In this document: one piece after another, positions 128 through 63,052 of the stretch
How the letters are laid out: each line of letters begins with the position of its first letter
Position numbering within the stretch: the first letter of the stretch is position 1
Assembly (NCBI RefSeq): GCF_000143415.4
Contig: NW_003314392.1
Location: 34,390 to 98,389 of the forward strand
Length of the DNA stretch: 64,000 bases
Reading direction: 5' to 3'
Source: Selaginella moellendorffii
Lineage: Eukaryota > Plantae > Lycopodiophyta
Program-made: the position numbers and the translations under genes
The notes under the pieces: model-generated
Databases searched by the model: none
Told to the model about the DNA's origin: nothing
What the model saw: the letters and a program-made list of their open reading frames with translations, nothing else

Positions 128-132
128 AAAAA
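128..132 (-). terminator. Pol III oligo-T terminator TTTTT (every unit)
   Basis: The only minus-strand T5 in the unit. It directly follows the 3' arm of the terminal stem. Confidence 0.6.
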
Positions 133-148
133 GAGGTGGCTCCGGGTG

Positions 149-159
149 GGTCTCGACCC
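149..159 (-). promoter_or_regulatory. Intragenic B-box-like element GGGTCGAGACC (every unit)
   Basis: One mismatch to GGTTCRANNCC (T>G at position 3). It lies 44 nt after the A-box. Confidence 0.6.
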
Positions 160-203
160 AGGGACCTATTTGAGTGGACTTGTTTTTAGATTGGGGGTCT
201 CTG

Positions 204-214
204 CCACTAGGCCT
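204..214 (-). promoter_or_regulatory. Intragenic A-box-like element AGGCCTAGTGG (every unit)
   Basis: Matches the TRGCNNARYGG consensus except at position 1 and lies ~+13 from the inferred start. Confidence 0.6.
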
Positions 215-246
215 CTACCACCTCTCCGTTACATATTTCGTGTCGG

Positions 247-257
247 TTAAATTTATT
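247..257 (-). promoter_or_regulatory. TATA-like element AATAAATTTAA at about -31..-21 (every unit)
   Basis: An 11-bp pure A/T run in a GC-rich unit, at the expected TBP/TFIIIB position upstream of the inferred start. Confidence 0.5.
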
Positions 258-479
258 GGGTTTGTGGGGGAGGGGGTTTAACTAGCAAAGGGCGATTATG
301 GGGAGCGCTTAGTGCGATTAAGTGGGGCTTAAGTTGGGGCAATCGCGGCCGTCGGTGCGGTGGGGTGGTTGACCGGCGGCGATGAGTTTGACCGGCGGTC
401 CCCGTGACACGTGGCTAGGGCTAGGGTCTGGATATGGGTTTTGCGCGAGTGGGCAAGATCCATGGCTCGGTTTGCGGTG

Positions 480-490
480 GGACTTGAACC
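480..490 (-). promoter_or_regulatory. Perfect B-box GGTTCAAGTCC in subrepeat copy A
   Basis: Forward GGACTTGAACC is an exact match to GGTTCRANNCC on the minus strand. Function is inferred. Confidence 0.45.
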
Positions 491-629
491 GTTGGAAAGC
501 TTGCGTGAGTCCACCCGTTTCCACAGAAACGGATCTGGATTTCGTCGCTCCACCGGCCCGCACCATTGCGATGGGTTTGACGCTGGGTTTTCGAGCGAGT
601 GGGCAACATCCATGGCTCGGTTTGCGGTG

Positions 630-640
630 GGACTTGAACC
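630..640 (-). promoter_or_regulatory. Perfect B-box GGTTCAAGTCC in subrepeat copy B
   Basis: Same motif 150 bp away. Function is inferred. Confidence 0.45.
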
Positions 641-1379
641 GTTGGAAAGCTTGCGTGAGTCCACCCGTTTCCACAGAAACGGATCCCGATTTCGTTGCTC
701 CACCGTCCCACACCATTGCAATGGGTTTTGTGCTGTTCCCGTTGCCATATCTCGTGGACCGTGGGCCCCCTTTCGCCCTTGGGCACATGGGAGCAACTGG
801 GGCGGTGCGCGCAACTGGCCCATGTGGCCAAGTACATTTTTCCATGTCCTGGGCGCCTGCTTTTGTGGTTTTTCCCACGGAAGAAGATGCGTCCCACGTG
901 GCGATCCGTGTGCCCGCCCGCACTCCGGCACCAACGGGGCCGGCCGGCGTGACGCCCCGGTCGCGGCCGTGCCAACGGATCGCGGGCCCACATGCGTGGG
1001 CTGCCGCCGGGAGTGCATCTCACTCTCGAGGAAAACACCGCAAACTGGCGCTCGGGCCTGCACTGGAACGCGACCCCAGGAGCGCCGTGGCGAAGCCCGC
1101 GTCGAGGGCATCGATCCGAATTGGCTGGGCCCCCCATGCCATGCTGGCACCGTGCGTGCCTTGTCGAAAACGGCACACCCTTGCGACCGCTGGGCGAAAG
1201 GGGCAAACCCCGAGAGGTCCTTGCACCTCCTGTCACTGGGGAGGGTGCCCCCCACGAACACGAACCCAACGGCGCCAGTCCCACGCGAAACGCACGCACG
1301 GTTCGCGAGAAAACGGCCCCCAACGCCCGCATTCTCCATTATTCCGAGAGAATATTCCCTCCACTACTTAAATTGTGCC

Positions 1380-1478
1380 AAAAAGAGGTGGCTCCGGGTG
1401 GGTCTCGACCCAGGGACCTATTTGAGTGGACTTGTTTTTAGATTGGGGGTCTCTGCCACTAGGCCTCTACCACCTCTC
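1380..1478 (-). ncRNA. Putative Pol III small RNA gene, copy 2
   Basis: Same cassette as copy 1. Confidence 0.65.
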
Positions 1479-2628
1479 CGTTACATATTTCGTGTCGGTT
1501 AAATTTATTGGGTTTGTGGGGGAGGGGGTTTAACTAGCAAAGGGCGATTATGGGGAGCGCTTAGTGCGATTAAGTGGGGCTTAAGTTGGGGCAATCGCGG
1601 CCGTCGGTGCGGTGGGGTGGTTGACCGGCGGCGATGAGTTTGACCGGCGGTCCCCGTGACACGTGGCTAGGGCTAGGGTCTGGATATGGGTTTTGCGCGA
1701 GTGGGCAAGATCCATGGCTCGGTTTGCGGTGGGACTTGAACCGTTGGAAAGCTTGCGTGAGTCCACCCGTTTCCACAGAAACGGATCTGGATTTCGTCGC
1801 TCCACCGGCCCGCACCATTGCGATGGGTTTGACGCTGGGTTTTCGAGCGAGTGGGCAACATCCATGGCTCGGTTTGCGGTGGGACTTGAACCGTTGGAAA
1901 GCTTGCGTGAGTCCACCCGTTTCCACAGAAACGGATCCCGATTTCGTTGCTCCACCGTCCCACACCATTGCAATGGGTTTTGTGCTGTTCCCGTTGCCAT
2001 ATCTCGTGGACCGTGGGCCCCCTTTCGCCCTTGGGCACATGGGAGCAACTGGGGCGGTGCGCGCAACTGGCCCATGTGGCCAAGTACATTTTTCCATGTC
2101 CTGGGCGCCTGCTTTTGTGGTTTTTCCCACGGAAGAAGATGCGTCCCACGTGGCGATCCGTGTGCCCGCCCGCACTCCGGCACCAACGGGGCCGGCCGGC
2201 GTGACGCCCCGGTCGCGGCCGTGCCAACGGATCGCGGGCCCCATGCGTGGGCTGCCGCCGGGAGTGCATCTCACTCTCGAGGAAAACACCGCACTGGCGC
2301 TCGGGCCTGCACTGGAACGCGACCCCAGGAGCGCCGTGGCGAAGCCCGCGTCGAGGGCATCGATCCGAATTGGCTGGGCCCCCCATGCCATGCTGGCACC
2401 GTGCGTGCCTTGTCGAAAACGGCACACCCTTGCGACCGCTGGGCGAAAGGGGCAAACCCCGAGAGGTCCTTGCACCTCCTGTCACTGGGGAGGGTGCCCC
2501 CCACGAACACGAACCCAACGGCGCCAGTCCCACGCGAAACGCACGCACGGTTCGCGAGAAAACGGCCCCCAACGCCCGCATTCTCCATTATTCCGAGAGA
2601 ATATTCCCTCCACTACTTAAATTGTGCC

Positions 2629-2727
2629 AAAAAGAGGTGGCTCCGGGTGGGTCTCGACCCAGGGACCTATTTGAGTGGACTTGTTTTTAGATTGGGGGTC
2701 TCTGCCACTAGGCCTCTACCACCTCTC
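2629..2727 (-). ncRNA. Putative Pol III small RNA gene, copy 3
   Basis: Same cassette as copy 1. Confidence 0.65.
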
Positions 2728-3876
2728 CGTTACATATTTCGTGTCGGTTAAATTTATTGGGTTTGTGGGGGAGGGGGTTTAACTAGCAAAGGGCGATTAT
2801 GGGGAGCGCTTAGTGCGATTAAGTGGGGCTTAAGTTGGGGCAATCGCGGCCGTCGGTGCGGTGGGGTGGTTGACCGGCGGCGATGAGTTTGACCGGCGGT
2901 CCCCGTGACACGTGGCTAGGGCTAGGGTCTGGATATGGGTTTTGCGCGAGTGGGCAAGATCCATGGCTCGGTTTGCGGTGGGACTTGAACCGTTGGAAAG
3001 CTTGCGTGAGTCCACCCGTTTCCACAGAAACGGATCTGGATTTCGTCGCTCCACCGGCCCGCACCATTGCGATGGGTTTGACGCTGGGTTTTCGAGCGAG
3101 TGGGCAACATCCATGGCTCGGTTTGCGGTGGGACTTGAACCGTTGGAAAGCTTGCGTGAGTCCACCCGTTCCACAGAAACGGATCCCGATTTCGTTGCTC
3201 CACCGTCCCACACCATTGCAATGGGTTTTGTGCTGTTCCCGTTGCCATATCTCGTGGACCGTGGGCCCCCTTTCGCCCTTGGGCACATGGGAGCAACTGG
3301 GGCGGTGCGCGCAACTGGCCCATGTGGCCAAGTACATTTTTCCATGTCCTGGGCGCCTGCTTTTGTGGTTTTTCCCACGGAAGAAGATGCGTCCCACGTG
3401 GCGATCCGTGTGCCCGCCCGCACTCCGGCACCAACGGGGCCGGCCGGCGTGACGCCCCGGTCGCGGCCGTGCCAACGGATCGCGGGCCCCATGCGTGGGC
3501 TGCCGCCGGGAGTGCATCTCACTCTCGAGGAAAACACCGCACTGGCGCTCGGGCCTGCACTGGAACGCGACCCCAGGAGCGCCGTGGCGAAGCCCGCGTC
3601 GAGGGCATCGATCCGAATTGGCTGGGCCCCCCATGCCATGCTGGCACCGTGCGTGCCTTGTCGAAAACGGCACACCCTTGCGACCGCTGGGCGAAAGGGG
3701 CAAACCCCGAGAGGTCCTTGCACCTCCTGTCACTGGGGAGGGTGCCCCCCACGAACACGAACCCAACGGCGCCAGTCCCACGCGAAACGCACGCACGGTT
3801 CGCGAGAAAACGGCCCCCAACGCCCGCATTCTCCATTATTCCGAGAGAATATTCCCTCCACTACTTAAATTGTGCC

Positions 3877-3975
3877 AAAAAGAGGTGGCTCCGGGTGGGT
3901 CTCGACCCAGGGACCTATTTGAGTGGACTTGTTTTTAGATTGGGGGTCTCTGCCACTAGGCCTCTACCACCTCTC
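3877..3975 (-). ncRNA. Putative Pol III small RNA gene, copy 4
   Basis: Same cassette as copy 1. Confidence 0.65.
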
Positions 3976-5125
3976 CGTTACATATTTCGTGTCGGTTAAA
4001 TTTATTGGGTTTGTGGGGGAGGGGGTTTAACTAGCAAAGGGCGATTATGGGGAGCGCTTAGTGCGATTAAGTGGGGCTTAAGTTGGGGCAATCGCGGCCG
4101 TCGGTGCGGTGGGGTGGTTGACCGGCGGCGATGAGTTTGACCGGCGGTCCCCGTGACACGTGGCTAGGGCTAGGGTCTGGATATGGGTTTTGCGCGAGTG
4201 GGCAAGATCCATGGCTCGGTTTGCGGTGGGACTTGAACCGTTGGAAAGCTTGCGTGAGTCCACCCGTTTCCACAGAAACGGATCTGGATTTCGTCGCTCC
4301 ACCGGCCCGCACCATTGCGATGGGTTTGACGCTGGGTTTTCGAGCGAGTGGGCAACATCCATGGCTCGGTTTGCGGTGGGACTTGAACCGTTGGAAAGCT
4401 TGCGTGAGTCCACCCGTTTCCACAGAAACGGATCCCGATTTCGTTGCTCCACCGTCCCACACCATTGCAATGGGTTTTGTGCTGTTCCCGTTGCCATATC
4501 TCGTGGACCGTGGGCCCCCTTTCGCCCTTGGGCACATGGGAGCAACTGGGGCGGTGCGCGCAACTGGCCCATGTGGCCAAGTACATTTTTCCATGTCCTG
4601 GGCGCCTGCTTTTGTGGTTTTTCCCACGGAAGAAGATGCGTCCCACGTGGCGATCCGTGTGCCCGCCCGCACTCCGGCACCAACGGGGCCGGCCGGCGTG
4701 ACGCCCCGGTCGCGGCCGTGCCAACGGATCGCGGGCCCCATGCGTGGGCTGCCGCCGGGAGTGCATCTCACTCTCGAGGAAAACACCGCACTGGCGCTCG
4801 GGCCTGCACTGGAACGCGACCCCAGGAGCGCCGTGGCGAAGCCCGCGTCGAGGGCATCGATCCGAATTGGCTGGGCCCCCCATGCCATGCTGGCACCGTG
4901 CGTGCCTTGTCGAAAACGGCACACCCTTGCGACCGCTGGGCGAAAGGGGCAAACCCCGAGAGGTCCTTGCACCTCCTGTCACTGGGGAGGGTGCCCCCCA
5001 CGAACACGAACCCAACGGCGCCAGTCCCACGCGAAACGCACGCACGTTTCGCGAGAAAACGGCCCCCAACGCCCGCATTCTCCATTATTCCGAGAGAATA
5101 TTCCCTCCACTACTTAAATTGTGCC

Positions 5126-6475: not shown

Positions 6476-7642
6476 CGTTACATATTTCGTGTCGGTTAAA
6501 TTTATTGGGTTTGTGGGGGAGGGGGTTTAACTAGCAAAGGGCGATTATGGGGAGCGCTTAGTGCGATTAAGTGGGGCTTAAGGATTAGTGGGGCTTAAGT
6601 TGGGGCAATGGCGGCCGTCGGTGCGGTGGGGTGGTGGACCGGCGGCGATGAGTTTGACCGCCGGTCCCCGTGACACGTGGCTAGGGCTAGGGTCTGGATA
6701 TGGGTTTTGCGCGAGTGGGCAAGATCCATGGCTCGGTTTGCGGTGGGACTTGAACCGTTGGAAAGCTTGCGTGAGTCCACCCGTTTCCACAGAAACGGAT
6801 CTGGATTTCGTCGCTCCACCGGCCCGCACCATTGCGATGGGTTTGACGCTGGGTTTTCGAGCGAGTGGGCAACATCCATGGCTCGGTTTGCGGTGGGACT
6901 TGAACCGTTGGAAAGCTTGCGTGAGTCCACCCGTTTCCACAGAAACGGATCCCGATTTCGTTGCTCCACCGTCCCACACCATTGCAATGGGTTTTGTGCT
7001 GTTCCCGTTGCCATATCTCGTGGACCGTGGGCCCCCTTTCGCCCTTGGGCACATGGGAGCAACTGGGGCGGTGCGCGCAACTGGCCCATGTGGCCAAGTA
7101 CATTTTTCCATGTCCTGGGCGCCTGCTTTTGTGGTTTTTCCCACGGAAGAAGATGCGTCCCACGTGGCGATCCGTGTGCCCGCCCGCACTCCGGCACCAA
7201 CGGGGCCGGCCGGCGTGACGCCCCGGTCGCGGCCGTGCCAACGGATCGCGGGCCCCATGCGTGGGCTGCCGCCGGGAGTGCATCTCACTCTCGAGGAAAA
7301 CACCGCACTGGCGCTCGGGCCTGCACTGGAACGCGACCCCAGGAGCGCCGTGGCGAAGCCCGCGTCGAGGGCATCGATCCGAATTGGCTGGGCCCCCCAT
7401 GCCATGCTGGCACCGTGCGTGCCTTGTCGAAAACGGCACACCCTTGCGACCGCTGGGCGAAAGGGGCAAACCCCGAGAGGTCCTTGCACCTCCTGTCACT
7501 GGGGAGGGTGCCCCCCAGGAACACGAACCCAACGGCGCCAGTCCCACGCGAAACGCACGCACGGTTCGCGAGAAAACGGGCCCCAACGCCCGCATTCTCC
7601 ATTATTCCGAGAGAATATTCCCTCCACTACTTAAATTGTGCC

Positions 7643-7741
7643 AAAAAGAGGTGGCTCCGGGTGGGTCTCGACCCAGGGACCTATTTGAGTGGACTTGTTT
7701 TTAGATTGGGGGTCTCTGCCACTAGGCCTCTACCACCTCTC
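7643..7741 (-). ncRNA. Putative Pol III small RNA gene, copy 7
   Basis: Same cassette as copy 1. Confidence 0.65.
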
Positions 7742-8891
7742 CGTTACATATTTCGTGTCGGTTAAATTTATTGGGTTTGTGGGGGAGGGGGTTTAACTAG
7801 CAAAGGGCGATTATGGGGAGCGCTTAGTGCGATTAAGTGGGGCTTAAGTTGGGGCAATCGCGGCCGTCGGTGCGGTGGGGTGGTTGACCGGCGGCGATGA
7901 GTTTGACCGGCGGTCCCCGTGACACGTGGCTAGGGCTAGGGTCTGGATATGGGTTTTGCGCGAGTGGGCAAGATCCATGGCTCGGTTTGCGGTGGGACTT
8001 GAACCGTTGGAAAGCTTGCGTGAGTCCACCCGTTTCCACAGAAACGGATCTAGATTTCGTCGCTCCACCGGCCCGCACCATTGCGATGGGTTTGACGCTG
8101 GGTTTTCGAGCGAGTGGGCAACATCCATGGCTCGGTTTGCGGTGGGACTTGAACCGTTGGAAAGCTTGCGTGAGTCCACCCGTTTCCACAGAAACGGATC
8201 CCGATTTCGTTGCTCCACCGTCCCACACCATTGCAATGGGTTTTGTGCTGTTCCCGTTGCCATATCTCGTGGACCGTGGGCCCCCTTTCGCCCTTGGGCA
8301 CATGGGAGCAACTGGGGCGGTGCGCGCAACTGGCCCATGTGGCCAAGTACATTTTTCCATGTCCTGGGCGCCTGCTTTTGTGGTTTTTCCCACGGAAGAA
8401 GATGCGTCCCACGTGGCGATCCGTGTGCCCGCCCGCACTCCGGCACCAACGGGGCCGGCCGGCGTGACGCCCCGGTCGCGGCCGTGCCAACGGATCGCGG
8501 GCCCCATGCGTGGGCTGCCGCCGGGAGTGCATCTCACTCTCGAGGAAAACACCGCACTGGCGCTCGGGCCTGCACTGGAACGCGACCCCAGGAGCGCCGT
8601 GGCGAAGCCCGCGTCGAGGGCATCGATCCGAATTGGCTGGGCCCCCCATGCCATGCTGGCACCGTGCGTGCCTTGTCGAAAACGGCACACCCTTGCGACC
8701 GCTGGGCGAAAGGGGCAAACCCCGAGAGGTCCTTGCACCTCCTGTCACTGGGGAGGGTGCCCCCCACGAACACGAACCCAACGGCGCCAGTCCCACGCGA
8801 AACGCACGCACGGTTCGCGAGAAAACGGCCCCCAACGCCCGCATTCTCCATTATTCCGAGAGAATATTCCCTCCACTACTTAAATTGTGCC

Positions 8892-36367: not shown

Positions 36368-36368
36368 C

Positions 36369-43724: not shown

Positions 43725-43826
43725 AAAAAGAAGGTGGGCTCCGGGTGGGTCTCGACCCGAGGGACCTATTTGAGTGGACTTGTTTTTAGATTGGGGGTCT
43801 CTGCCACTAGGCCTCTACCACCTCTC
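43725..43826 (-). ncRNA. Putative Pol III small RNA gene, copy 36
   Basis: Same cassette with three 1-nt insertions inside a low-quality patch. Confidence 0.55.
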
Positions 43827-48822: not shown

Positions 48823-49031
48823 CGTTACATATTTCGTGTCGGTTAAATTTATTGGGTTTGTGGGGGAGGGGGTTTAACTAGCAAAGGGCGATTATGGGGA
48901 GCGCTTAGTGCGATTAAGTGGGGCTTAAGTTGGGGCAATCGCGGCCGTCGGTGCGGTGGGGTGGTTGACCGGCGGCGATGAGTTTGACCGGCGGTCCCCG
49001 TGACACGTGGCTAGGGCTAGGGTCTGGATAT

Positions 49032-49474
49032 GGGTTTTGCGCGAGTGGGCAAGATCCATGGCTCGGTTTGCGGTGGGACTTGAACCGTTGGAAAGCTTGC
49101 GTGAGTCCACCCGTTTCCACAGAAACGGATCTGGATTTCGTCGCTCCACCGGCCCGCACCATTGCGATGGGTTTGACGCTGGGTTTTCGAGCGAGTGGGC
49201 AACATCCATGGCTCGGTTTGCGGTGGGACTTGAACCGTTGGAAAGCTTGCGTGAGTCCACCCGTTTCCACAGAAACGGATCTGGATTTCGTCGCTCCACC
49301 GGCCCGCACCATTGCGATGGGTTTGACGCTGGGTTTTCGAGCGAGTGGGCAACATCCATGGCTCGGTTTGCGGTGGGACTTGAACCGTTGGAAAGCTTGC
49401 GTGAGTCCACCCGTTTCCACAGAAACGGATCCCGATTTCGTTGCTCCACCGTCCCACACCATTGCAATGGGTTT
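49032..49474. repeat. Unit with three 150-bp subrepeats; unit length 1399
   Basis: Three GGACTTGAACC-containing copies. Landmark spacing is 48846 to 50245. Confidence 0.95.
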
Positions 49475-50122
49475 TGTGCTGTTCCCGTTGCCATATCTCG
49501 TGGACCGTGGGCCCCCTTTCGCCCTTGGGCACATGGGAGCAACTGGGGCGGTGCGCGCAACTGGCCCATGTGGCCAAGTACATTTTTCCATGTCCTGGGC
49601 GCCTGCTTTTGTGGTTTTTCCCACGGAAGAAGATGCGTCCCACGTGGCGATCCGTGTGCCCGCCCGCACTCCGGCACCAACGGGGCCGGCCGGCGTGACG
49701 CCCCGGTCGCGGCCGTGCCAACGGATCGCGGGCCCCATGCGTGGGCTGCCGCCGGGAGTGCATCTCACTCTCGAGGAAAACACCGCACTGGCGCTCGGGC
49801 CTGCACTGGAACGCGACCCCAGGAGCGCCGTGGCGAAGCCCGCGTCGAGGGCATCGATCCGAATTGGCTGGGCCCCCCATGCCATGCTGGCACCGTGCGT
49901 GCCTTGTCGAAAACGGCACACCCTTGCGACCGCTGGGCGAAAGGGGCAAACCCCGAGAGGTCCTTGCACCTCCTGTCACTGGGGAGGGTGCCCCCCACGA
50001 ACACGAACCCAACGGCGCCAGTCCCACGCGAAACGCACGCACGGTTCGCGAGAAAACGGCCCCCAACGCCCGCATTCTCCATTATTCCGAGAGAATATTC
50101 CCTCCACTACTTAAATTGTGCC

Positions 50123-50221
50123 AAAAAGAGGTGGCTCCGGGTGGGTCTCGACCCAGGGACCTATTTGAGTGGACTTGTTTTTAGATTGGGGGTCTCTGCC
50201 ACTAGGCCTCTACCACCTCTC
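50123..50221 (-). ncRNA. Putative Pol III small RNA gene, copy 41
   Basis: Same cassette as copy 1. Confidence 0.65.
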
Positions 50222-51368
50222 CGTTACATATTTCGTGTCGGTTAAATTTATTGGGTTTGTGGGGGAGGGGGTTTAACTAGCAAAGGGCGATTATGGGGAG
50301 CGCTTAGTGCGATTAAGTGGGGCTTAAGTTGGGGCAATCGCGGCCGTCGGTGCGGTGGGGTGGTTGACCGGCGGCGATGAGTTTGACCGGCGGTCCCCGT
50401 GACACGTGGCTAGGGCTAGGGTCTGGATATGGGTTTTGCGCGAGTGGGCAAGATCCATGGCTCGGTTTGCGGTGGGACTTGAACCGTTGGAAAGCTTGCG
50501 TGAGTCCACCCGTTTTCCAGAAACGGATCTGGATTTCGTCGCTCGCCGGCCCGCACCATTGCGATGGGTTTGACGCTGGGTTTTCGAGCGAGTGGGCAAC
50601 ATCCATGGCTCGGTTTGCGGTGGGACTTGAACCGTTGGAAAGCTTGCGTGAGTCCACCCGTTTCCACAGAAACGGATCCCGATTTCGTTGCTCCACCGTC
50701 CCACACCATTGCAATGGGTTTTGTGCTGTTCCCGTTGCCATATCTCGTGGACCGTGGGCCCCCTTTCGCCCTTGGGCACATGGGAGCAACTGGGGCGGTG
50801 CGCGCAACTGGCCCATGTGGCCAAGTACATTTTTCCATGTCCTGGGCGCCTGCTTTTGTGGTTTTTCCCACGGAAGAAGATGCGTCCCACGTGGCGATCC
50901 GTGTGCCCGCCCGCACTCCGGCACCAACGGGGCCGGCCGGCGTGACGCCCCGGTCGCGGCCGTGCCAACGGATCGCGGGCCCCATGCGTGGGCTGCCGCC
51001 GGGAGTGCATCTCACTCTCGAGGAAAACACCGCACTGGCGCTCGGGCCTGCACTGGAACGCGACCCCAGGAGCGCCGTGGCGAAGCCCGCGTCGAGGGCA
51101 TCGATCCGAATTGGCTGGGCCCCCCATGCCATGCTGGCACCGTGCGTGCCTTGTCGAAAACGGCACACCCTTGCGACCGCTGGGCGAAAGGGGCAAACCC
51201 CGAGAGGTCCTTGCACCTCCTGTCACTGGGGAGGGTGCCCCCCACGAACACGAACCCAACGGCGCCAGTCCCACGCGAAACGCACGCACGGTTCGCGAGA
51301 AAACGGCCCCCAACGCCCGCATTCTCCATATTCCGAGAGAATATTCCCTCCACTACTTAAATTGTGCC

Positions 51369-51467
51369 AAAAAGAGGTGGCTCCGGGTGGGTCTCGACCC
51401 AGGGACCTATTTGAGTGGACTTGTTTTTAGATTGGGGGTCTCTGCCACTAGGCCTCTACCACCTCTC
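51369..51467 (-). ncRNA. Putative Pol III small RNA gene, copy 42
   Basis: Same cassette as copy 1. Confidence 0.65.
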
Positions 51468-51676
51468 CGTTACATATTTCGTGTCGGTTAAATTTATTGG
51501 GTTTGTGGGGGAGGGGGTTTAACTAGCAAAGGGCGATTATGGGGAGCGCTTAGTGCGATTAAGTGGGGCTTAAGTTGGGGCAATCGCGGCCGTCGGTGCG
51601 GTGGGGTGGTTGACCGGCGGCGATGAGTTTGACCGGCGGTCCCCGTGACACGTGGCTAGGGCTAGGGTCTGGATAT

Positions 51677-52119
51677 GGGTTTTGCGCGAGTGGGCAAGAT
51701 CCATGGCTCGGTTTGCGGTGGGACTTGAACCGTTGGAAAGCTTGCGTGAGTCCACCCGTTTCCACAGAAACGGATCTGGATTTCGTCGCTCCACCGGCCC
51801 GCACCATTGCGATGGGTTTGACGCTGGGTTTTCGAGCGAGTGGGCAACATCCATGGCTCGGTTTGCGGTGGGACTTGAACCGTTGGAAAGCTTGCGTGAG
51901 TCCACCCGTTTCCACAGAAACGGATCTGGATTTCGTCGCTCCACCGGCCCGCACCATTGCGATGGGTTTGACGCTGGGTTTTCGAGCGAGTGGGCAACAT
52001 CCATGGCTCGGTTTGCGGTGGGACTTGAACCGTTGGAAAGCTTGCGTGAGTCCACCCGTTTCCACAGAAACGGATCCCGATTTCGTTGCTCCACCGTCCC
52101 ACACCATTGCAATGGGTTT
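51677..52119. repeat. Unit with three 150-bp subrepeats; unit length 1399
   Basis: Landmark spacing is 51491 to 52890. Confidence 0.95.
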
Positions 52120-52767
52120 TGTGCTGTTCCCGTTGCCATATCTCGTGGACCGTGGGCCCCCTTTCGCCCTTGGGCACATGGGAGCAACTGGGGCGGTGCG
52201 CGCAACTGGCCCATGTGGCCAAGTACATTTTTCCATGTCCTGGGCGCCTGCTTTTGTGGTTTTTCCCACGGAAGAAGATGCGTCCCACGTGGCGATCCGT
52301 GTGCCCGCCCGCACTCCGGCACCAACGGGGCCGGCCGGCGTGACGCCCCGGTCGCGGCCGTGCCAACGGATCGCGGGCCCCATGCGTGGGCTGCCGCCGG
52401 GAGTGCATCTCACTCTCGAGGAAAACACCGCACTGGCGCTCGGGCCTGCACTGGAACGCGACCCCAGGAGCGCCGTGGCGAAGCCCGCGTCGAGGGCATC
52501 GATCCGAATTGGCTGGGCCCCCCATGCCATGCTGGCACCGTGCGTGCCTTGTCGAAAACGGCACACCCTTGCGACCGCTGGGCGAAAGGGGCAAACCCCG
52601 AGAGGTCCTTGCACCTCCTGTCACTGGGGAGGGTGCCCCCCACGAACACGAACCCAACGGCGCCAGTCCCACGCGAAACGCACGCACGGTTCGCGAGAAA
52701 ACGGCCCCCAACGCCCGCATTCTCCATTATTCCGAGAGAATATTCCCTCCACTACTTAAATTGTGCC

Positions 52768-52866
52768 AAAAAGAGGTGGCTCCGGGTGGGTCTCGACCCA
52801 GGGACCTATTTGAGTGGACTTGTTTTTAGATTGGGGGTCTCTGCCACTAGGCCTCTACCACCTCTC
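52768..52866 (-). ncRNA. Putative Pol III small RNA gene, copy 43
   Basis: Same cassette as copy 1. Confidence 0.65.
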
Positions 52867-54016
52867 CGTTACATATTTCGTGTCGGTTAAATTTATTGGG
52901 TTTGTGGGGGAGGGGGTTTAACTAGCAAAGGGCGATTATGGGGAGCGCTTAGTGCGATTAAGTGGGGCTTAAGTTGGGGCAATCGCGGCCGTCGGTGCGG
53001 TGGGGTGGTTGACCGGCGGCGATGAGTTTGACCGGCGGTCCCCGTGACACGTGGCTAGGGCTAGGGTCTGGATATGGGTTTTGCGCGAGTGGGCAAGATC
53101 CATGGCTCGGTTTGCGGTGGGACTTGAACCGTTGGAAAGCTTGCGTGAGTCCACCCGTTTCCACAGAAACGGATCTGGATTTCGTCGCTCCACCGGCCCG
53201 CACCATTGCGATGGGTTTGACGCTGGGTTTTCGAGCGAGTGGGCAACATCCATGGCTCGGTTTGCGGTGGGACTTGAACCGTTGGAAAGCTTGCGTGAGT
53301 CCACCCGTTTCCACAGAAACGGATCCCGATTTCGTTGCTCCACCGTCCCACACCATTGCAATGGGTTTTGTGCTGTTCCCGTTGCCATATCTCGTGGACC
53401 GTGGGCCCCCTTTCGCCCTTGGGCACATGGGAGCAACTGGGGCGGTGCGCGCAACTGGCCCATGTGGCCAAGTACATTTTTCCATGTCCTGGGCGCCTGC
53501 TTTTGTGGTTTTTCCCACGGAAGAAGATGCGTCCCACGTGGCGATCCGTGTGCCCGCCCGCACTCCGGCACCAACGGGGCCGGCCGGCGTGACGCCCCGG
53601 TCGCGGCCGTGCCAACGGATCGCGGGCCCCATGCGTGGGCTGCCGCCGGGAGTGCATCTCACTCTCGAGGAAAACACCGCACTGGCGCTCGGGCCTGCAC
53701 TGGAACGCGACCCCAGGAGCGCCGTGGCGAAGCCCGCGTCGAGGGCATCGATCCGAATTGGCTGGGCCCCCCATGCCATGCTGGCACCGTGCGTGCCTTG
53801 TCGAAAACGGCACACCCTTGCGACCGCTGGGCGAAAGGGGCAAACCCCGAGAGGTCCTTGCACCTCCTGTCACTGGGGAGGGTGCCCCCCACGAACACGA
53901 ACCCAACGGCGCCAGTCCCACGCGAAACGCACGCACGGTTCGCGAGAAAACGGCCCCCAACGCCCGCATTCTCCATTATTCCGAGAGAATATTCCCTCCA
54001 CTACTTAAATTGTGCC

Positions 54017-54115
54017 AAAAAGAGGTGGCTCCGGGTGGGTCTCGACCCAGGGACCTATTTGAGTGGACTTGTTTTTAGATTGGGGGTCTCTGCCACTAGG
54101 CCTCTACCACCTCTC
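54017..54115 (-). ncRNA. Putative Pol III small RNA gene, copy 44
   Basis: Same cassette as copy 1. Confidence 0.65.
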
Positions 54116-54324
54116 CGTTACATATTTCGTGTCGGTTAAATTTATTGGGTTTGTGGGGGAGGGGGTTTAACTAGCAAAGGGCGATTATGGGGAGCGCTTA
54201 GTGCGATTAAGTGGGGCTTAAGTTGGGGCAATCGCGGCCGTCGGTGCGGTGGGGTGGTTGACCGGCGGCGATGAGTTTGACCGGCGGTCCCCGTGACACG
54301 TGGCTAGGGCTAGGGTCTGGATAT

Positions 54325-54767
54325 GGGTTTTGCGCGAGTGGGCAAGATCCATGGCTCGGTTTGCGGTGGGACTTGAACCGTTGGAAAGCTTGCGTGAGTC
54401 CACCCGTTTCCACAGAAACGGATCTGGATTTCGTCGCTCCACCGGCCCGCACCATTGCGATGGGTTTGACGCTGGGTTTTCGAGCGAGTGGGCAAGATCC
54501 ATGGCTCGGTTTGCGGTGGGACTTGAACCGTTGGAAAGCTTGCGTGAGTCCACCCGTTTCCACAGAAACGGATCTGGATTTCGTCGCTCCACCGGCCCGC
54601 ACCATTGCGATGGGTTTGACGCTGGGTTTTCGAGCGAGTGGGCAACATCCATGGCTCGGTTTGCGGTGGGACTTGAACCGTTGGAAAGCTTGCGTGAGTC
54701 CACCCGTTTCCACAGAAACGGATCCCGATTTCGTTGCTCCACCGTCCCACACCATTGCAATGGGTTT
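54325..54767. repeat. Unit with three 150-bp subrepeats and a different hybrid middle copy
   Basis: The middle copy reads CGAGCGAGTGGGCAAGATCC (G at 54496). Confidence 0.95.
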
Positions 54768-55114
54768 TGTGCTGTTCCCGTTGCCATATCTCGTGGACCG
54801 TGGGCCCCCTTTCGCCCTTGGGCACATGGGAGCAACTGGGGCGGTGCGCGCAACTGGCCCATGTGGCCAAGTACATTTTTCCATGTCCTGGGCGCCTGCT
54901 TTTGTGGTTTTTCCCACGGAAGAAGATGCGTCCCACGTGGCGATCCGTGTGCCCGCCCGCACTCCGGCACCAACGGGGCCGGCCGGCGTGACGCCCCGGT
55001 CGCGGCCGTGCCAACGGATCGCGGGCCCCATGCGTGGGCTGCCGCCGGGAGTGCATCTCACTCTCGAGGAAAACCCCGCGCTGGCGCTCGGGCCTGCACT
55101 GGAACGCGACCCCA

Positions 55115-55214
55115 NNNNNNNNNNNNNNNNNNNNNNNNNNNNNNNNNNNNNNNNNNNNNNNNNNNNNNNNNNNNNNNNNNNNNNNNNNNNNNNNNNNNNN
55201 NNNNNNNNNNNNNN
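55115..55214. other. Assembly gap (100 N, probably arbitrary size)
   Basis: Exactly 100 N stand where the consensus has 59 bp. Confidence 0.97.
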
Positions 55215-55456
55215 GCCATGCTGGCACCGTGCGTGCCTTGTCGAAAACGGCACACCCTTGCGACCGCTGGGCGAAAGGGGCAAACCCCGAGAGGTCCTTG
55301 CACCTCCTGTCACTGGGGAGGGTGCCCCCCACGAACACGAACCCAACGGCGCCAGTCCCACGCGAAACGCACGCACGGTTCGCGAGAAAACGGCCCCCAA
55401 CGCCCGCATTCTCCATTATTCCGAGAGAATATTCCCTCCACTACTTAAATTGTGCC

Positions 55457-55555
55457 AAAAAGAGGTGGCTCCGGGTGGGTCTCGACCCAGGGACCTATTT
55501 GAGTGGACTTGTTTTTAGATTGGGGGTCTCTGCCACTAGGCCTCTACCACCTCTC
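55457..55555 (-). ncRNA. Putative Pol III small RNA gene, copy 45
   Basis: Same cassette as copy 1. Confidence 0.65.
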
Positions 55556-56705
55556 CGTTACATATTTCGTGTCGGTTAAATTTATTGGGTTTGTGGGGGA
55601 GGGGGTTTAACTAGCAAAGGGCGATTATGGGGAGCGCTTAGTGCGATTAAGTGGGGCTTAAGTTGGGGCAATCGCGGCCGTCGGTGCGGTGGGGTGGTTG
55701 ACCGGCGGCGATGAGTTTGACCGGCGGTCCCCGTGACACGTGGCTAGGGCTAGGGTCTGGATATGGGTTTTGCGCGAGTGGGCAAGATCCATGGCTCGGT
55801 TTGCGGTGGGACTTGAACCGTTGGAAAGCTTGCGTGAGTCCACCCGTTTCCACAGAAACGGATCTGGATTTCGTCGCTCCACCGGCCCGCACCATTGCGA
55901 TGGGTTTGACGCTGGGTTTTCGAGCGAGTGGGCAACATCCATGGCTCGGTTTGCGGTGGGACTTGAACCGTTGGAAAGCTTGCGTGAGTCCACCCGTTTC
56001 CACAGAAACGGATCCCGATTTCGTTGCTCCACCGTCCCACACCATTGCAATGGGTTTTGTGCTGTTCCCGTTGCCATATCTCGTGGACCGTGGGCCCCCT
56101 TTCGCCCTTGGGCACATGGGAGCAACTGGGGCGGTGCGCGCAACTGGCCCATGTGGCCAAGTACATTTTTCCATGTCCTGGGCGCCTGCTTTTGTGGTTT
56201 TTCCCACGGAAGAAGATGCGTCCCACGTGGCGATCCGTGTGCCCGCCCGCACTCCGGCACCAACGGGGCCGGCCGGCGTGACGCCCCGGTCGCGGCCGTG
56301 CCAACGGATCGCGGGCCCCATGCGTGGGCTGCCGCCGGGAGTGCATCTCACTCTCGAGGAAAACACCGCACTGGCGCTCGGGCCTGCACTGGAACGCGAC
56401 CCCAGGAGCGCCGTGGCGAAGCCCGCGTCGAGGGCATCGATCCGAATTGGCTGGGCCCCCCATGCCATGCTGGCACCGTGCGTGCCTTGTCGAAAACGGC
56501 ACACCCTTGCGACCGCTGGGCGAAAGGGGCAAACCCCGAGAGGTCCTTGCACCTCCTGTCACTGGGGAGGGTGCCCCCCACGAACACGAACCCAACGGCG
56601 CCAGTCCCACGCGAAACGCACGCACGGTTCGCGAGAAAACGGCCCCCAACGCCCGCATTCTCCATTATTCCGAGAGAATATTCCCTCCACTACTTAAATT
56701 GTGCC

Positions 56706-58053: not shown

Positions 58054-59204
58054 CGTTACATATTTCGTGTCGGTTAAATTTATTGGGTTTGTGGGGGAGG
58101 GGGTTTAACTAGCAAAGGGCGATTATGGGGAGCGCTTAGTGCGATTAAGTGGGGCTTAAGTTGGGGCAATCGCGGCCGTCGGTGCGGTGGGGTGGTTGAC
58201 CGGCGGCGATGAGTTTGACCGGCGGTCCCCGTGACACGTGGCTAGGGCTAGGGTCTGGATATGGGTTTTGCGCGAGTGGGCAAGATCCATGGCTCGGTTT
58301 GCGGTGGGACTTGAACCGTTGGAAAGCTTGCGTGAGTCCACCCGTTTCCACAGAAACGGATCTGGATTTCGTCGCTCCACCGGCCCGCACCATTGCGATG
58401 GGTTTGACGCTGGGTTTTCGAGCGAGTGGGCAACATCCATGGCTCGGTTTGCGGTGGGACTTGAACCGTTGGAAAGCTTGCGTGAGTCCACCCGATTTCC
58501 ACAGAAACGGATCCCGATTTCGTTGCTCCACCGTCCCACACCATTGCAATGGGTTTTGTGCTGTTCCCGTTGCCATATCTCGTGGACCGTGGGCCCCCTT
58601 TCGCCCTTGGGCACATGGGAGCAACTGGGGCGGTGCGCGCAACTGGCCCATGTGGCCAAGTACATTTTTCCATGTCCTGGGCGCCTGCTTTTGTGGTTTT
58701 TCCCACGGAAGAAGATGCGTCCCACGTGGCGATCCGTGTGCCCGCCCGCACTCCGGCACCAACGGGGCCGGCCGGCGTGACGCCCCGGTCGCGGCCGTGC
58801 CAACGGATCGCGGGCCCCATGCGTGGGCTGCCGCCGGGAGTGCATCTCACTCTCGAGGAAAACACCGCACTGGCGCTCGGGCCTGCACTGGAACGCGACC
58901 CCAGGAGCGCCGTGGCGAAGCCCGCGTCGAGGGCATCGATCCGAATTGGCTGGGCCCCCCATGCCATGCTGGCACCGTGCGTGCCTTGTCGAAAACGGCA
59001 CACCCTTGCGACCGCTGGGCGAAAGGGGCAAACCCCGAGAGGTCCTTGCACCTCCTGTCACTGGGGAGGGTGCCCCCCACGAACACGAACCCAACGGCGC
59101 CAGTCCCACACGAAACGCACGCACGGTTCGCGAGAAAACGGCCCCCAACGCCCGCATTCTCCATTATTCCAAGAGAATATTCCCTCCACTACTTAAATTG
59201 TGCC

Positions 59205-59303
59205 AAAAAGAGGTGGCTCCGGGTGGGTCTCGACCCAGGGACCTATTTGAGTGGACTTGTTTTTAGATTGGGGGTCTCTGCCACTAGGCCTCTACCACCT
59301 CTC
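59205..59303 (-). ncRNA. Putative Pol III small RNA gene, copy 48
   Basis: Same cassette as copy 1. Confidence 0.65.
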
Positions 59304-60453
59304 CGTTACATATTTCGTGTCGGTTAAATTTATTGGGTTTGTGGGGGAGGGGGTTTAACTAGCAAAGGGCGATTATGGGGAGCGCTTAGTGCGATTAAGT
59401 GGGGCTTAAGTTGGGGCAATCGCGGCCGTCGGTGCGGTGGGGTGGTTGACCGGCGGCGATGAGTTTGACCGGCGGTCCCCGTGACACGTGGCTAGGGCTA
59501 GGGTCTGGATATGGGTTTTGCGCGAGTGGGCAAGATCCATGGCTCGGTTTGCGGTGGGACTTGAACCGTTGGAAAGCTTGCGTGAGTCCACCCGTTTCCA
59601 CAGAAACGGATCTGGATTTCGTCGCTCCACCGGCCCGCACCATTGCGATGGGTTTGACGCTGGGTTTTCGAGCGAGTGGGCAACATCCATGGCTCGGTTT
59701 GCGGTGGGACTTGAACCGTTGGAAAGCTTGCGTGAGTCCACCCGTTTCCACAGAAACGGATCCCGATTTCGTTGCTCCACCGTCCCACACCATTGCAATG
59801 GGTTTTGTGCTGTTCCCGTTGCCATATCTCGTGGACCGTGGGCCCCCTTTCGCCCTTGGGCACATGGGAGCAACTGGGGCGGTGCGCGCAACTGGCCCAT
59901 GTGGCCAAGTACATTTTTCCATGTCCTGGGCGCCTGCTTTTGTGGTTTTTCCCACGGAAGAAGATGCGTCCCACGTGGCGATCCGTGTGCCCGCCCGCAC
60001 TCCGGCACCAACGGGGCCGGCCGGCGTGACGCCCCGGTCGCGGCCGTGCCAACGGATCGCGGGCCCCATGCGTGGGCTGCCGCCGGGAGTGCATCTCACT
60101 CTCGAGGAAAACACCGCACTGGCGCTCGGGCCTGCACTGGAACGCGACCCCAGGAGCGCCGTGGCGAAGCCCGCGTCGAGGGCATCGATCCGAATTGGCT
60201 GGGCCCCCCATGCCATGCTGGCACCGTGCGTGCCTTGTCGAAAACGGCACACCCTTGCGACCGCTGGGCGAAAGGGGCAAACCCCGAGAGGTCCTTGCAC
60301 CTCCTGTCACTGGGGAGGGTGCCCCCCACGAACACGAACCCAACGGCGCCAGTCCCACGCGAAACGCACGCACGGTTCGCGAGAAAACGGCCCCCAACGC
60401 CCGCATTCTCCATTATTCCGAGAGAATATTCCCTCCACTACTTAAATTGTGCC

Positions 60454-60552
60454 AAAAAGAGGTGGCTCCGGGTGGGTCTCGACCCAGGGACCTATTTGAG
60501 TGGACTTGTTTTTAGATTGGGGGTCTCTGCCACTAGGCCTCTACCACCTCTC
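60454..60552 (-). ncRNA. Putative Pol III small RNA gene, copy 49
   Basis: Same cassette as copy 1. Confidence 0.65.
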
Positions 60553-61702
60553 CGTTACATATTTCGTGTCGGTTAAATTTATTGGGTTTGTGGGGGAGGG
60601 GGTTTAACTAGCAAAGGGCGATTATGGGGAGCGCTTAGTGCGATTAAGTGGGGCTTAAGTTGGGGCAATCGCGGCCGTCGGTGCGGTGGGGTGGTTGACC
60701 GGCGGCGATGAGTTTGACCGGCGGTCCCCGTGACACGTGGCTAGGGCTAGGGTCTGGATATGGGTTTTGCGCGAGTGGGCAAGATCCATGGCTCGGTTTG
60801 CGGTGGGACTTGAACCGTTGGAAAGCTTGCGTGAGTCCACCCGTTTCCACAGAAACGGATCTGGATTTCGTCGCTCCACCGGCCCGCACCATTGCGATGG
60901 GTTTGACGCTGGGTTTTCGAGCGAGTGGGCAACATCCATGGCTCGGTTTGCGGTGGGACTTGAACCGTTGGAAAGCTTGCGTGAGTCCACCCGTTTCCAC
61001 AGAAACGGATCCCGATTTCGTTGCTCCACCGTCCCACACCATTGCAATGGGTTTTGTGCTGTTCCCGTTGCCATATCTCGTGGACCGTGGGCCCCCTTTC
61101 GCCCTTGGGCACATGGGAGCAACTGGGGCGGTGCGCGCAACTGGCCCATGTGGCCAAGTACATTTTTCCATGTCCTGGGCGCCTGCTTTTGTGGTTTTTC
61201 CCACGGAAGAAGATGCGTCCCACGTGGCGATCCGTGTGCCCGCCCGCACTCCGGCACCAACGGGGCCGGCCGGCGTGACGCCCCGGTCGCGGCCGTGCCA
61301 ACGGATCGCGGGCCCCATGCGTGGGCTGCCGCCGGGAGTGCATCTCACTCTCGAGGAAAACACCGCACTGGCGCTCGGGCCTGCACTGGAACGCGACCCC
61401 AGGAGCGCCGTGGCGAAGCCCGCGTCGAGGGCATCGATCCGAATTGGCTGGGCCCCCCATGCCATGCTGGCACCGTGCGTGCCTTGTCGAAAACGGCACA
61501 CCCTTGCGACCGCTGGGCGAAAGGGGCAAACCCCGAGAGGTCCTTGCACCTCCTGTCACTGGGGAGGGTGCCCCCCACGAACACGAACCCAACGGCGCCA
61601 GTCCCACGCGAAACGCACGCACGGTTCGCGAGAAAACGGCCCCCAACGCCCGCATTCTCCATTATTCCGAGAGAATATTCCCTCCACTACTTAAATTGTG
61701 CC

Positions 61703-61801
61703 AAAAAGAGGTGGCTCCGGGTGGGTCTCGACCCAGGGACCTATTTGAGTGGACTTGTTTTTAGATTGGGGGTCTCTGCCACTAGGCCTCTACCACCTCT
61801 C
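61703..61801 (-). ncRNA. Putative Pol III small RNA gene, copy 50
   Basis: Same cassette as copy 1. Confidence 0.65.
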
Positions 61802-62953
61802 CGTTACATATTTCGTGTCGGTTAAATTTATTGGGTTTGTGGGGGAGGGGGTTTAACTAGCAAAGGGCGATTATGGGGAGCGCTTAGTGCGATTAAGTGG
61901 GGCTTAAGTTGGGGCAATCGCGGCCGTCGGTGCGGTGGGGTGGTTGACCGGCGGCGATGAGTTTGACCGGCGGTCCCCGTGACACGTGGCTAGGGCTAGG
62001 GTCTGGATATGGGTTTTGCGCGAGTGGGCAAGATCCATGGCTCGGTTTGCGGTGGGACTTGAACCGTTGGAAAGCTTGCGTGAGTCCACCCTGTTTCCAC
62101 AGAAACGGATCTGGATTTCGTCGCTCCACCGGCCCGCACCATTGCGATGGGTTTGACGCTGGGTTTTCGAGCGAGTGGGCAACATCCATGGCTCGGTTTG
62201 CGGTGGGACTTGAACCGTTGGAAAGCTTGCGTGAGTCCACCCGTTTCCACAGAAACGGATCCCGATTTCGTTGCTCCACCGTCCCACACCATTGCAATGG
62301 GTTTTGTGCTGTTCCCGTTGCCATATCTCGTGGACCGTGGGCCCCCTTTCGCCCTTGGGCACATGGGAGCAACTGGGGCGGTGCGCGCAACTGGCCCATG
62401 TGGCCAAGTACATTTTTCCATGTCCTGGGCGCCTGCTTTTGTGGTTTTTCCCACGGAAGAAGATGCGTCCCACGTGGCGATCCGTGTGCCCGCCCGCACT
62501 CCGGCACCAACGGGGCCGGCCGGCGTGACGCCCCGGTCGCGGCCGTGCCAACGGATCGCGGGCCCCATGCGTGGGCTGCCGCCGGGAGTGCATCTCACTC
62601 TCGAGGAAAACACCGCACTGGCGCTCGGGCCTGCACTGGAACGCGACCCCAGGAGCGCCGTGGCGAAGCCCGCGTCGAGGGCATCGATCCGAATTGGCTG
62701 GGCCCCCCATGCCATGCTGGCACCGTGCGTGCCTTGTCGAAAACGGCACACCCTTGCGACCGCTGGGCGAAAGGGGCAAACCCCGAGAGGTCCTTGCACC
62801 TCCTGTCACTGGGGAGGGTGCCCCCCCACGAACACGAACCCAACGGCGCCAGTCCCACGCGAAACGCACGCACGGTTCGCGAGAAAACGGCCCCCAACGC
62901 CCGCATTCTCCATTATTCCGAGAGAATATTCCCTCCACTACTTAAATTGTGCC

Positions 62954-63052
62954 AAAAAGAGGTGGCTCCGGGTGGGTCTCGACCCAGGGACCTATTTGAG
63001 TGGACTTGTTTTTAGATTGGGGGTCTCTGCCACTAGGCCTCTACCACCTCTC
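62954..63052 (-). ncRNA. Putative Pol III small RNA gene, copy 51
   Basis: Same cassette as copy 1. Confidence 0.65.

Follow-up and report, generated by a model that had tools for sequence, protein, structure and literature searches.

A very homogeneous 1249-bp Selaginella satellite with a candidate type-2 RNA polymerase III gene in each unit

Structure of the satellite array

The window, which is the whole stretch of 64,000 nucleotides of Selaginella moellendorffii DNA that was analysed, is occupied by a single head-to-tail array of a 1249-bp satellite unit. The array lies on the minus strand from about position 28 to position 64000, continuing past the right-hand edge of the window, and it comprises 50 full units and one partial unit; positions 1–27 are outside the satellite. 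The reference unit (1561–2809, minus strand, 1249 bp) has its own copy of the 100-nt cassette described below at 2629–2728. The minus strand contains 51 occurrences of the anchor sequence GGTCGAGACC at a spacing of mostly 1248–1252 bp, which agrees with the tandem array of at least 51 minus-strand genes proposed in an earlier note on this DNA. Over 47 good units among the 51, 48 variant events were counted, and this 1249-bp spikemoss repeat is very homogeneous. It has the characteristics of satellite DNA, namely a long array, near-identical non-coding units, length variants and a higher-order pattern, the last seen at 48905–55637, where units of 1399 bp and approximately 1249 bp alternate. The long open reading frames of the unit have no matches in Pfam or protein databases.

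An internal subrepeat of 150 bp (435–728, minus strand) is normally present in two copies per unit. The number varies, with one copy in a single unit of 1099 bp and three copies in three units of approximately 1399 bp. In every subrepeat copy, the cassette strand bears GGTTCAAGTCC, a perfect match to the B-box consensus, and this sequence occurs at 103 sites in the window, all of them on that strand, which corresponds to two or three sites per unit in addition to the cassette.

The array is interrupted by three runs of N. The flanks of each are in the phase of the unit and share the same orientation, so that, leaving aside an unknown number of whole units, none of the gaps breaks the register of the array. 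The gap at 36117–36367 (251 N) adjoins the 3′ end of a cassette, and 250 nt would be needed there for a continuous unit; at 37904–38043 both the gap and the length needed are 140 nt. The gap at 55115–55214 has 100 N where 59 nt would be needed, and it is a placeholder. No cassette is removed by any of the gaps. The tandem joint going back 1249 nt is also present in contigs of another sequencing run, which may be a source of the assembly.

The cassette and its promoter elements

The first copy of the 100-nt cassette is located at 128–227 on the minus strand and is predicted to encode a Pol III transcript of approximately 95 nt followed by a run of five T residues. The remaining 50 cassettes follow at intervals of approximately 1249 bp, the last of them at 62954–63053. 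The cassette region forms an island of lower GC content (43–55%) inside a unit of 60–80% GC, which favours the Pol III gene.

The elements of the cassette were located letter by letter in the first copy, with the first G at position 227 taken as +1, and all five elements that the earlier note had described were recovered on the minus strand in the correct order and spacing. The TATA-like sequence AATAAATTTAA lies at 247–257 (−30 to −20) and is the only 11-mer of the unit with at least ten A/T residues. The A-box-like sequence AGGCCTAGTGG lies at 204–214 (+14 to +24), with one mismatch from TRGCNNAGTGG, and the B-box-like sequence GGGTCGAGACC lies at 149–159 (+69 to +79), with one mismatch from GGTTCGANNCC; the two boxes are 55 nt apart, start to start. 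The 5′ arm of the predicted terminal helix, AGAGGTGG, lies at 218–225, and the 3′ arm, CCACCTCT, runs into TTTTT at 128–139, where the arm occupies 132–139 and the T run 128–132. This T run (+96 to +100) is the sole T5 on the cassette strand of the unit, and no run of four T residues occurs within +1 to +95.

In the type-2 Pol III layout, the A box is found approximately 10–20 nt past the start and the B box approximately 30–60 nt or more past the A box, and four to five or more T residues follow soon after the B box, with no such run inside the gene; for plant tRNA genes and 4.5S genes, an A/T-rich or TATA-like element near −30 is also described as required (PMC7544208, PMC10137851). The A box, the B box, the T run and the upstream TATA-like element of the cassette all conform to this layout. 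[quoted passage not shown] The CAA triplet between −1 and −20, which is important for the transcription of plant tRNA genes (PMC7544208), is absent from −20 to −1 of the cassette (CCGACACGAAATATGTAAC), and this counts against reading it as a Pol III gene; the clustered Ser tRNA genes of Arabidopsis also have no CAA triplet (PMC7544208). Taken together, each monomer appears to carry one intact type-2 (tRNA-like) Pol III unit that has an upstream TATA-like box and corresponds to no described RNA family.

The predicted transcript

If the cassette is transcribed, TFIIIC would bind the A box (+14) and the B box (+69), and TFIIIB would be positioned over the A/T-rich element at approximately −30 to −20. 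Pol III would then initiate at a purine of GGAGAGG (window positions 225–227 in the first copy) and terminate within the T5 run. The resulting RNA would be approximately 95–98 nt long, with its 5′ and 3′ ends joined in a 10-bp helix that carries a U-tail. A second, interrupted arm would include the A-box sequence, the B-box sequence would sit in a 6-bp hairpin, and a single-stranded, A-rich loop of approximately 26 nt would remain.

In the predicted fold, the terminal helix pairs positions 2–11 with positions 88–97 without a bulge, and the minimum free energy is −32.7 kcal mol−1. The fold is modestly better than that of shuffled sequences (z = −1.62), being equalled by 11 of 200 shuffles, which counts against the Pol III gene. 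In favour of the gene, complementarity of its two ends has been found to prolong the life of a small Pol III RNA (PMC3440375).

Interpretation and related systems

The cassette is a well-formed candidate Pol III gene. We lean towards the reading that it originated as a true Pol III gene, was amplified as part of a satellite, is competent in its sequence and is possibly silenced. The layout is backed as that of a Pol III gene by the rodent 4.5SH and 4.5SI genes, because the same arrangement of A and B boxes with a TATA-like box at −31/−24 is functional there (PMC10137851). The candidate resembles both families in the length of the predicted RNA (approximately 100 nt), the A and B boxes with a TATA-like box, and the narrow taxonomic range, and it also resembles 4.5SI in that the 5′ end is complementary to the 3′ end, which stabilises the 4.5SI RNA (PMC3440375). 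It further resembles 4.5SH in having one gene per long tandem-repeat unit, 4.5SH genes being present in hundreds of copies, one in each unit of a 4–5 kb repeat (PMC10137851). The unit is 1.25 kb here compared with 4–5 kb, the host is a plant, and no 7SL or tRNA ancestry is detectable.

The nearest plant systems are the tRNA gene clusters of Arabidopsis (Ser-Tyr-Tyr ×27, Pro, and Cys), which share the upstream A/T-rich element, the A and B boxes and the poly-T run, and which are arranged head-to-tail in units of kilobase scale or smaller, in or near heterochromatin (PMC7544208). These are true tRNA genes, whereas the cassette fails every tRNA test and has no CAA at −1 to −20. The tandemly clustered Arabidopsis genes are epigenetically silenced even though every one of their Pol III cis-elements is retained (PMC7544208). 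By analogy with them, most copies of the cassette may be silenced, and any expression may be conditional.

One small Pol III RNA gene per tandem unit, as predicted here, is also the arrangement of Xenopus satellite 1/OAX, a Pol III-transcribed small RNA that occurs once per repeat unit. The same is reported for primate snaR (PMC3045588). Neither is related to the cassette in sequence, and expression has been shown for OAX and snaR, and transcription and function for 4.5SH, whereas the cassette is predicted from its sequence. The array is also similar to 5S rDNA in its many units, each with a single small Pol III gene (a candidate here) and a spacer homogenised along with that gene; the 5S gene differs in its type 1 promoter, whose internal control region is bound by TFIIIA.

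To our knowledge, there is no known tandem array of a small plant Pol III gene outside 5S rDNA and tRNA clusters, and the literature search turned up no account of the cassette sequence or of a comparable Selaginella satellite. Should the copies prove silent, the array would offer a naturally occurring example of a satellite that contains numerous intact Pol III promoters, and it would help in investigating the silencing of arrayed Pol III genes in plants.

Uniformity and expression of the copies

The exact 100-nt cassette is present on the minus strand in 48 of the 51 copies. One of the three non-identical cassettes has a clean G7→T substitution at window position 41308, which disrupts a pair of the helix without compensation and counts against the Pol III gene. 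Another has several single-base insertions, and its unit (42645–43907) looks low in quality throughout; the third directly adjoins the N gap at 36117–36367. The earlier note had likewise seen one clean substitution among the 51 copies and had remarked that the spacer is nearly as homogeneous. The 140 nt of promoter and cassette contain 2 variant events compared with 5.4 expected, a difference that is not significant (Fisher p = 0.16). The spacer is as uniform as the cassette, and nothing within the array points to stronger selection on the cassette than on the spacer, which counts against the Pol III gene.

No reads were found over the whole unit in three RNA-seq runs (X24, X30 and X31), a count that carries no control for the presence of the organism. 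Words of the cassette were found in none of approximately 12 contig sets that bear the label of the same species and were guessed to be RNA. Libraries of 150-nt paired reads would, in addition, probably lose a 95-nt RNA.

These data bear on the proposal that the array is a family of highly and actively expressed genes whose product is a functional, lineage-specific RNA approximately 95–99 nt long, and that dosage was the reason for its amplification, as with 5S rDNA, 4.5SH or snaR. The full set of cis-elements in 48 of the 51 copies is in its favour, as are the terminal helix, which favours a stable RNA (PMC3440375), and the precedent of 4.5SH with its hundreds of copies, one per tandem unit (PMC10137851). 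The uniformity of the spacer, equal to that of the cassette, speaks against it, as do the Arabidopsis tandem clusters that are silenced with intact signals (PMC7544208) and, as a weak test, the lack of reads and contig words in the RNA data. We therefore regard this proposal as unlikely. The interpretation given in the earlier note is retained in its type-2 layout and its lack of a known RNA family, and its dosage amplification in the manner of 5S rDNA finds no support here.

It is conceivable, if rather doubtful, that the cassette represents a new lineage-specific family of lycophyte Pol III RNAs, expressed, in some tissue or stage at least, from 100 or more arrayed genes at several loci, possibly at chromosome ends. 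Such an RNA would be the plant equivalent of RNAs of the 4.5SH, snaR or vault type, and in it the A-rich loop may be the working surface and the terminal helix may provide stability. Transcription of the cassette would establish a new family of plant ncRNAs, one that is simple to test because a single probe covers approximately 100 near-identical copies.

Known RNA families

Searches for a known family covered 161 nt (positions 100–260) with Rfam cmscan at E ≤ 10 and gave no hit to tRNA, tRNA-Sec, vault RNA, Y RNA, 5S rRNA or SRP RNA; the only two hits were sub-threshold and on the opposite strand. ARAGORN found no tRNA gene at default settings or with introns allowed, and relaxed thresholds gave scattered noise on both strands. 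In the tRNA register set by the two boxes, only two of the five pairs of the T stem can form, and the acceptor stem is unpaired, as read from the bases. Y RNA is also rejected because the terminal helix has no bulge of the kind found in the Ro60-binding helix. SINEs are characterised by dispersed copies that have target-site duplications and a LINE-like or A-rich tail; within the window, the cassette is found only inside the array, and it ends in the helix followed by T5. As judged by cmscan, the cassette belongs to no Rfam family at E ≤ 10, and with the ARAGORN result this bears out the description of the RNA as unrecognised.

It is accordingly improbable that the cassette is a member or a decayed copy of a known family, such as a tRNA gene or pseudogene, the head of a tRNA-derived SINE, a vault RNA or a Y RNA. 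Both boxes do look like those of tRNA genes, and the combination of panhandle, internal boxes and TATA element recalls vault RNA genes, which share with the cassette a length of approximately 90–100 nt, an upstream TATA element, and the pairing of both ends. Vault RNA genes form small clusters, unlike the array of at least 50 units seen here, and plants are reported to have, in all probability, no vaults (PMC3762200). The lack of a match in ARAGORN and cmscan, together with the poor tRNA pairing, disfavours a known family, and SINEs do not end in T5 directly after a terminal helix.

Putative TFIIIC sites and chance occurrence

The perfect B boxes of the subrepeats raise the question of whether the array acts at the level of DNA, as a series of TFIIIC-binding sites that organise or bound chromatin, with the RNA being irrelevant. 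In yeast, sites that consist of a B box only are known to organise or bound chromatin. The two or three additional boxes per unit fit such a role, given that a perfect B box is estimated to occur by chance in approximately 2% of units. The putative TFIIIC sites of the subrepeats stem from one duplicated sequence and represent a single event, and the precedents are in yeast. A DNA-level role is quite improbable for these reasons, and the amplified Pol III gene remains the preferred reading.

The motifs were chosen after the fact by a reader who was looking for something notable, which counts against the Pol III gene. The joint occurrence of the motifs was examined by a scan that allowed at most one mismatch in the A box, at most one mismatch in a B box 30–75 nt downstream, and required a run of at least four T residues within 45 nt. 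The sole hit in the real unit was the cassette, and the three elements occurred together in 0.085% of 20,000 Markov-1 random units scanned on both strands, so that the type-2 layout suggested in the earlier note holds in both spacing and co-occurrence. The longest helix in the unit between windows 81 nt apart is the terminal helix of the cassette, with 11 bp including G-U.

That an ordinary non-coding satellite carries these Pol III-like motifs by coincidence is very improbable: the loose A-box and B-box consensus sequences, the roughly ten clusters of helices of at least 8 bp at the same spacing in a G+C-rich unit, the small z-score of the fold and the post-hoc inspection of a large genome make it easier to imagine, but the rarity of the A box, B box and T4 run is compounded by the other elements, and the rough product of the odds (an estimate, unsimulated) is approximately 1e-7 per unit, a small figure even when set against a genome of approximately 240 Mb. 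The motif set is judged to be non-random because A box, B box and T run are rarely combined in random units and because the sole T5 on the strand, the sole 11-mer with at least ten A/T residues and the longest helix are all found at the positions that a Pol III gene requires.

Pol III-Type Elements of the Cassette

The whole window is essentially a single tandem array of a 1249-bp satellite unit, in line with the earlier note, which had read it as an array of at least 51 unrecognised Pol III small RNA genes. The minus strand contains 51 copies of the anchor GGTCGAGACC, almost always spaced 1248–1252 bp apart, and the exact 100-nt cassette, a candidate Pol III gene of ~95 nt followed by T5, is found unchanged 48 times.

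The elements of the first copy (window 128–227, minus strand) were verified letter by letter, with +1 at window 227. The TATA-like element AATAAATTTAA lies at 247–257 (−30 to −20), followed on the same minus strand by the 5' arm AGAGGTGG at 218–225 (+3 to +10), the A box AGGCCTAGTGG at 204–214 (+14 to +24), the B box GGGTCGAGACC at 149–159 (+69 to +79), the 3' arm CCACCTCT at 132–139 (+89 to +96), and the terminator TTTTT at 128–132 (+96 to +100). The five Pol III-type elements described previously are therefore all present in the order and spacing given there, with an offset of one base because the earlier numbering starts at 226. The CAA triplet that plant tRNA genes usually carry between −1 and −20 (PMC7544208) is absent from this interval of the cassette, and no plant snRNA upstream element was found near it; the snRNA-type element RTCCCACATCG matched only with 2 mismatches, at sites that are distant from the cassette and on the opposite strand to it.

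Likely Status and Known Analogues

The reading that is somewhat favored is that the cassette is a genuine Pol III gene module that was amplified as part of the satellite, which would be competent to judge from its motifs and whose activity is possibly silenced. Its closest working analogue is the rodent 4.5SH gene, which likewise gives an RNA of ~100 nt, contains A and B boxes together with a TATA-like box at −31/−24 that is needed for efficient transcription, and occurs as one gene per 4–5 kb tandem-repeat unit, in hundreds of copies (PMC10137851). The related 4.5SI RNA is long-lived owing to its complementary ends (PMC3440375), which offers a rationale for the terminal helix of the predicted cassette RNA. 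The closest plant analogue is the set of tandem tRNA gene clusters of Arabidopsis, which retain every Pol III signal and nevertheless undergo silencing in most tissues (PMC7544208; PMC12308677); arraying therefore does not imply high dosage. That the cassette represents an expressed, functional new RNA family is considered rather doubtful.

Three RNA-seq runs with the same species label were mapped to one unit, with ~9.2 million records read per run, and gave 0 reads; this mapping is no test, because no other stretch served as a control showing the presence of the organism in those runs, and the result is not evidence of silence. Libraries of 150-nt paired reads, whose preparation is not on record here, would probably lose an RNA of 95 nt as well. 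Cassette words were absent from about 12 contig sets guessed to be RNA. The contigs of a fourth run contain the whole unit and the tandem joint, which supports the tandem arrangement; this run may be DNA and may be a source of the assembly.

All sequencing runs holding the cassette sequence share one species label. Among three runs of one study under that label (X20, X22 and X23), one contains the complete satellite, with word depths of ~29–95, and the other two contain none of its words, which may reflect different library types or a satellite that differs between plants. Metagenome and prokaryote genome contigs contained no match to a gapped A-to-B pattern, and two matches from a 21-mer pattern scan (L001 and L002) were attributed to chance: both lie in bacterial sequence that is G+C-rich and shows no resemblance beyond the 21-mer. 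The literature search on the cassette sequence, Selaginella satellites and Selaginella Pol III RNAs found nothing relevant.

Likelihood of a Chance Assembly

A coincidental assembly of Pol III motifs in the cassette is unlikely. In 20,000 Markov-1 random units searched on either strand, an A box with at most one mismatch, a B box with at most one mismatch 30–75 nt downstream of it, and a T4 run at most 45 nt away were found together in 0.085% of units, and the same motif search in the real unit gave the cassette as the sole match. Moreover, that strand has no T5 within the 1249 bp besides the one of the cassette, no 11-mer of the unit other than the TATA-like element reaches 10 A/T, and no pair of windows spaced in this way in the unit forms a longer helix than the terminal one (11 bp including G-U). 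Because the G+C-rich unit contains many helices of 8 bp, arms of that length, as first described, are unremarkable by themselves. The combined odds were put at roughly 1e-7 per unit, which is our estimated product rather than a simulated value and refers to features picked after the fact. The previously proposed type-2 Pol III gene layout is thus borne out by a motif set that is rare in random units and by the three coinciding features. The cassette and its flanks also form an island of lower G+C content, 43–55% compared with 60–80% in the rest of the unit.

Predicted RNA and Comparison with Known Families

The predicted fold of the cassette RNA has an energy of −32.7 kcal/mol. A 10-bp helix joins both ends, leaving the U-tail; a two-part arm pairs the A-box sequence with CCACU and AGGUC, the B-box sequence lies inside a 6-bp hairpin, and an A-rich loop of ~26 nt is open. 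The predicted fold is only modestly better than that of shuffled sequences (z = −1.62; 11 of 200 shuffles fold equally well).

The predicted RNA would lie outside all known families. A scan of window 1–4000 against Rfam 15 at E ≤ 1 gave no match, and a scan of 100–260 at E ≤ 10 gave no match to tRNA, vault, Y RNA, 5S, SRP or snRNA; TB6Cs1H3 (16 bits; cutoff 40) and mir-1281 appeared in the latter as sub-threshold, opposite-strand matches and were taken as chance. Vault particles are reported to be probably absent from plants (PMC3762200). ARAGORN found no tRNA in the default and intron modes, and the 5–8 "genes" returned at relaxed thresholds were scattered over the unit on both strands and were regarded as noise. 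In the tRNA register set by the A and B boxes, by our reading of the sequence, the T-stem pairs at 2 of 5 positions and the acceptor stem is unpaired. The RNA thus remains unassigned to tRNA or any other family in the Rfam and ARAGORN searches, as the earlier note had supposed.

Telomerase RNA was rejected, since the unit contains no CCCTAAA/TTTAGGG and (CCCTAG)2 occurs once per unit, outside the RNA, ~190 nt upstream of the next cassette; the plant-type heptamer is absent throughout the window. Nothing points to a coding origin, because the long open reading frames of the unit gave nothing above threshold in Pfam and four of them (one singly, three as an alignment) showed no relative in the protein collection; exact look-ups of eight open reading frames returned nothing on record. 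A common descent of the cassette and the 150-bp subrepeat, the internal duplication of the unit, was suggested by B-box regions that look alike by eye and was unsupported by blastn self-comparison or by Smith-Waterman alignment (score 23, shuffle mean 22.3; 133 of 300 shuffles equally good).

Variation among Units

The array is almost uniform, with 48 variant events over 1249 positions in 47 good units. The promoter and cassette (140 nt) contain 2 events compared with 5.4 expected (Fisher p = 0.16), which agrees with the earlier view that the spacer is almost as homogeneous as the cassette; as the shortfall is not significant, the array argues neither for nor against constraint on the cassette. 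The one clean substitution reported among the cassettes was recovered as G7→T at window 41308, which breaks a pair of the terminal helix and is uncompensated. The homogeneity is attributable to a satellite that is either young or evolving in concert. The units at 42645–43907, 37800–39047 and 6558–7823 each have 11–26 scattered single-base changes and small insertions, compared with 0–5 elsewhere, a pattern that suggests poor sequence quality and not a greater age of these copies.

The flanks of all three N runs share one orientation and are in phase with the unit. The gap at 36117–36367 is written as 251 N where a continuous unit needs 250 nt, that at 37904–38043 as 140 N where 140 nt are needed, and that at 55115–55214 as 100 N where 59 nt are needed. 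The written lengths of the first two thus follow the repeat, and that of the third is a placeholder; additional whole units may be hidden in the gaps. No cassette is lost to the gaps. The gap at 36117–36367 starts immediately after one cassette, whose final bases show an apparent sequencing error.

Structure of the Array and the Unit

The G+C content of the window is 61%. The array continues past its right end, and at the left end positions 1–27 (GTTATTACAATAACAATGCTCGACGTC) are non-satellite, the unit beginning at ~28. With its longest period at 500, Tandem Repeats Finder reported 42 occurrences of the 150-bp internal duplication, which recur in phase with the longer unit. Unit lengths of 1099, 1249 and 1399 bp correspond to one, two and three subrepeat copies. 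A 1099-bp unit with a single subrepeat lies at 40297–41395, and at 48905–55637 units of 1399, 1246, 1399, 1249 and ~1399 bp alternate, with three and two subrepeats, respectively. This alternation is a local two-unit higher-order repeat, and together with the variants in subrepeat number it is ordinary satellite dynamics.

Every 150-bp subrepeat carries GGTTCAAGTCC, a perfect B-box consensus, on the minus strand (window 480–490 and 630–640, with equivalents in each unit), and the window contains 103 occurrences on the cassette strand and 0 on the plus strand. No A box or T run was found near it, and the chance of a perfect B box is, by our estimate, ~2% per unit; a remnant of some other Pol III element, a binding site for TFIIIC and simple coincidence are all conceivable. 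Two telomere-like hexamers, CCCTAGCCCTAGCC, occur once in each unit on the minus strand, at window 413–426 in the first.
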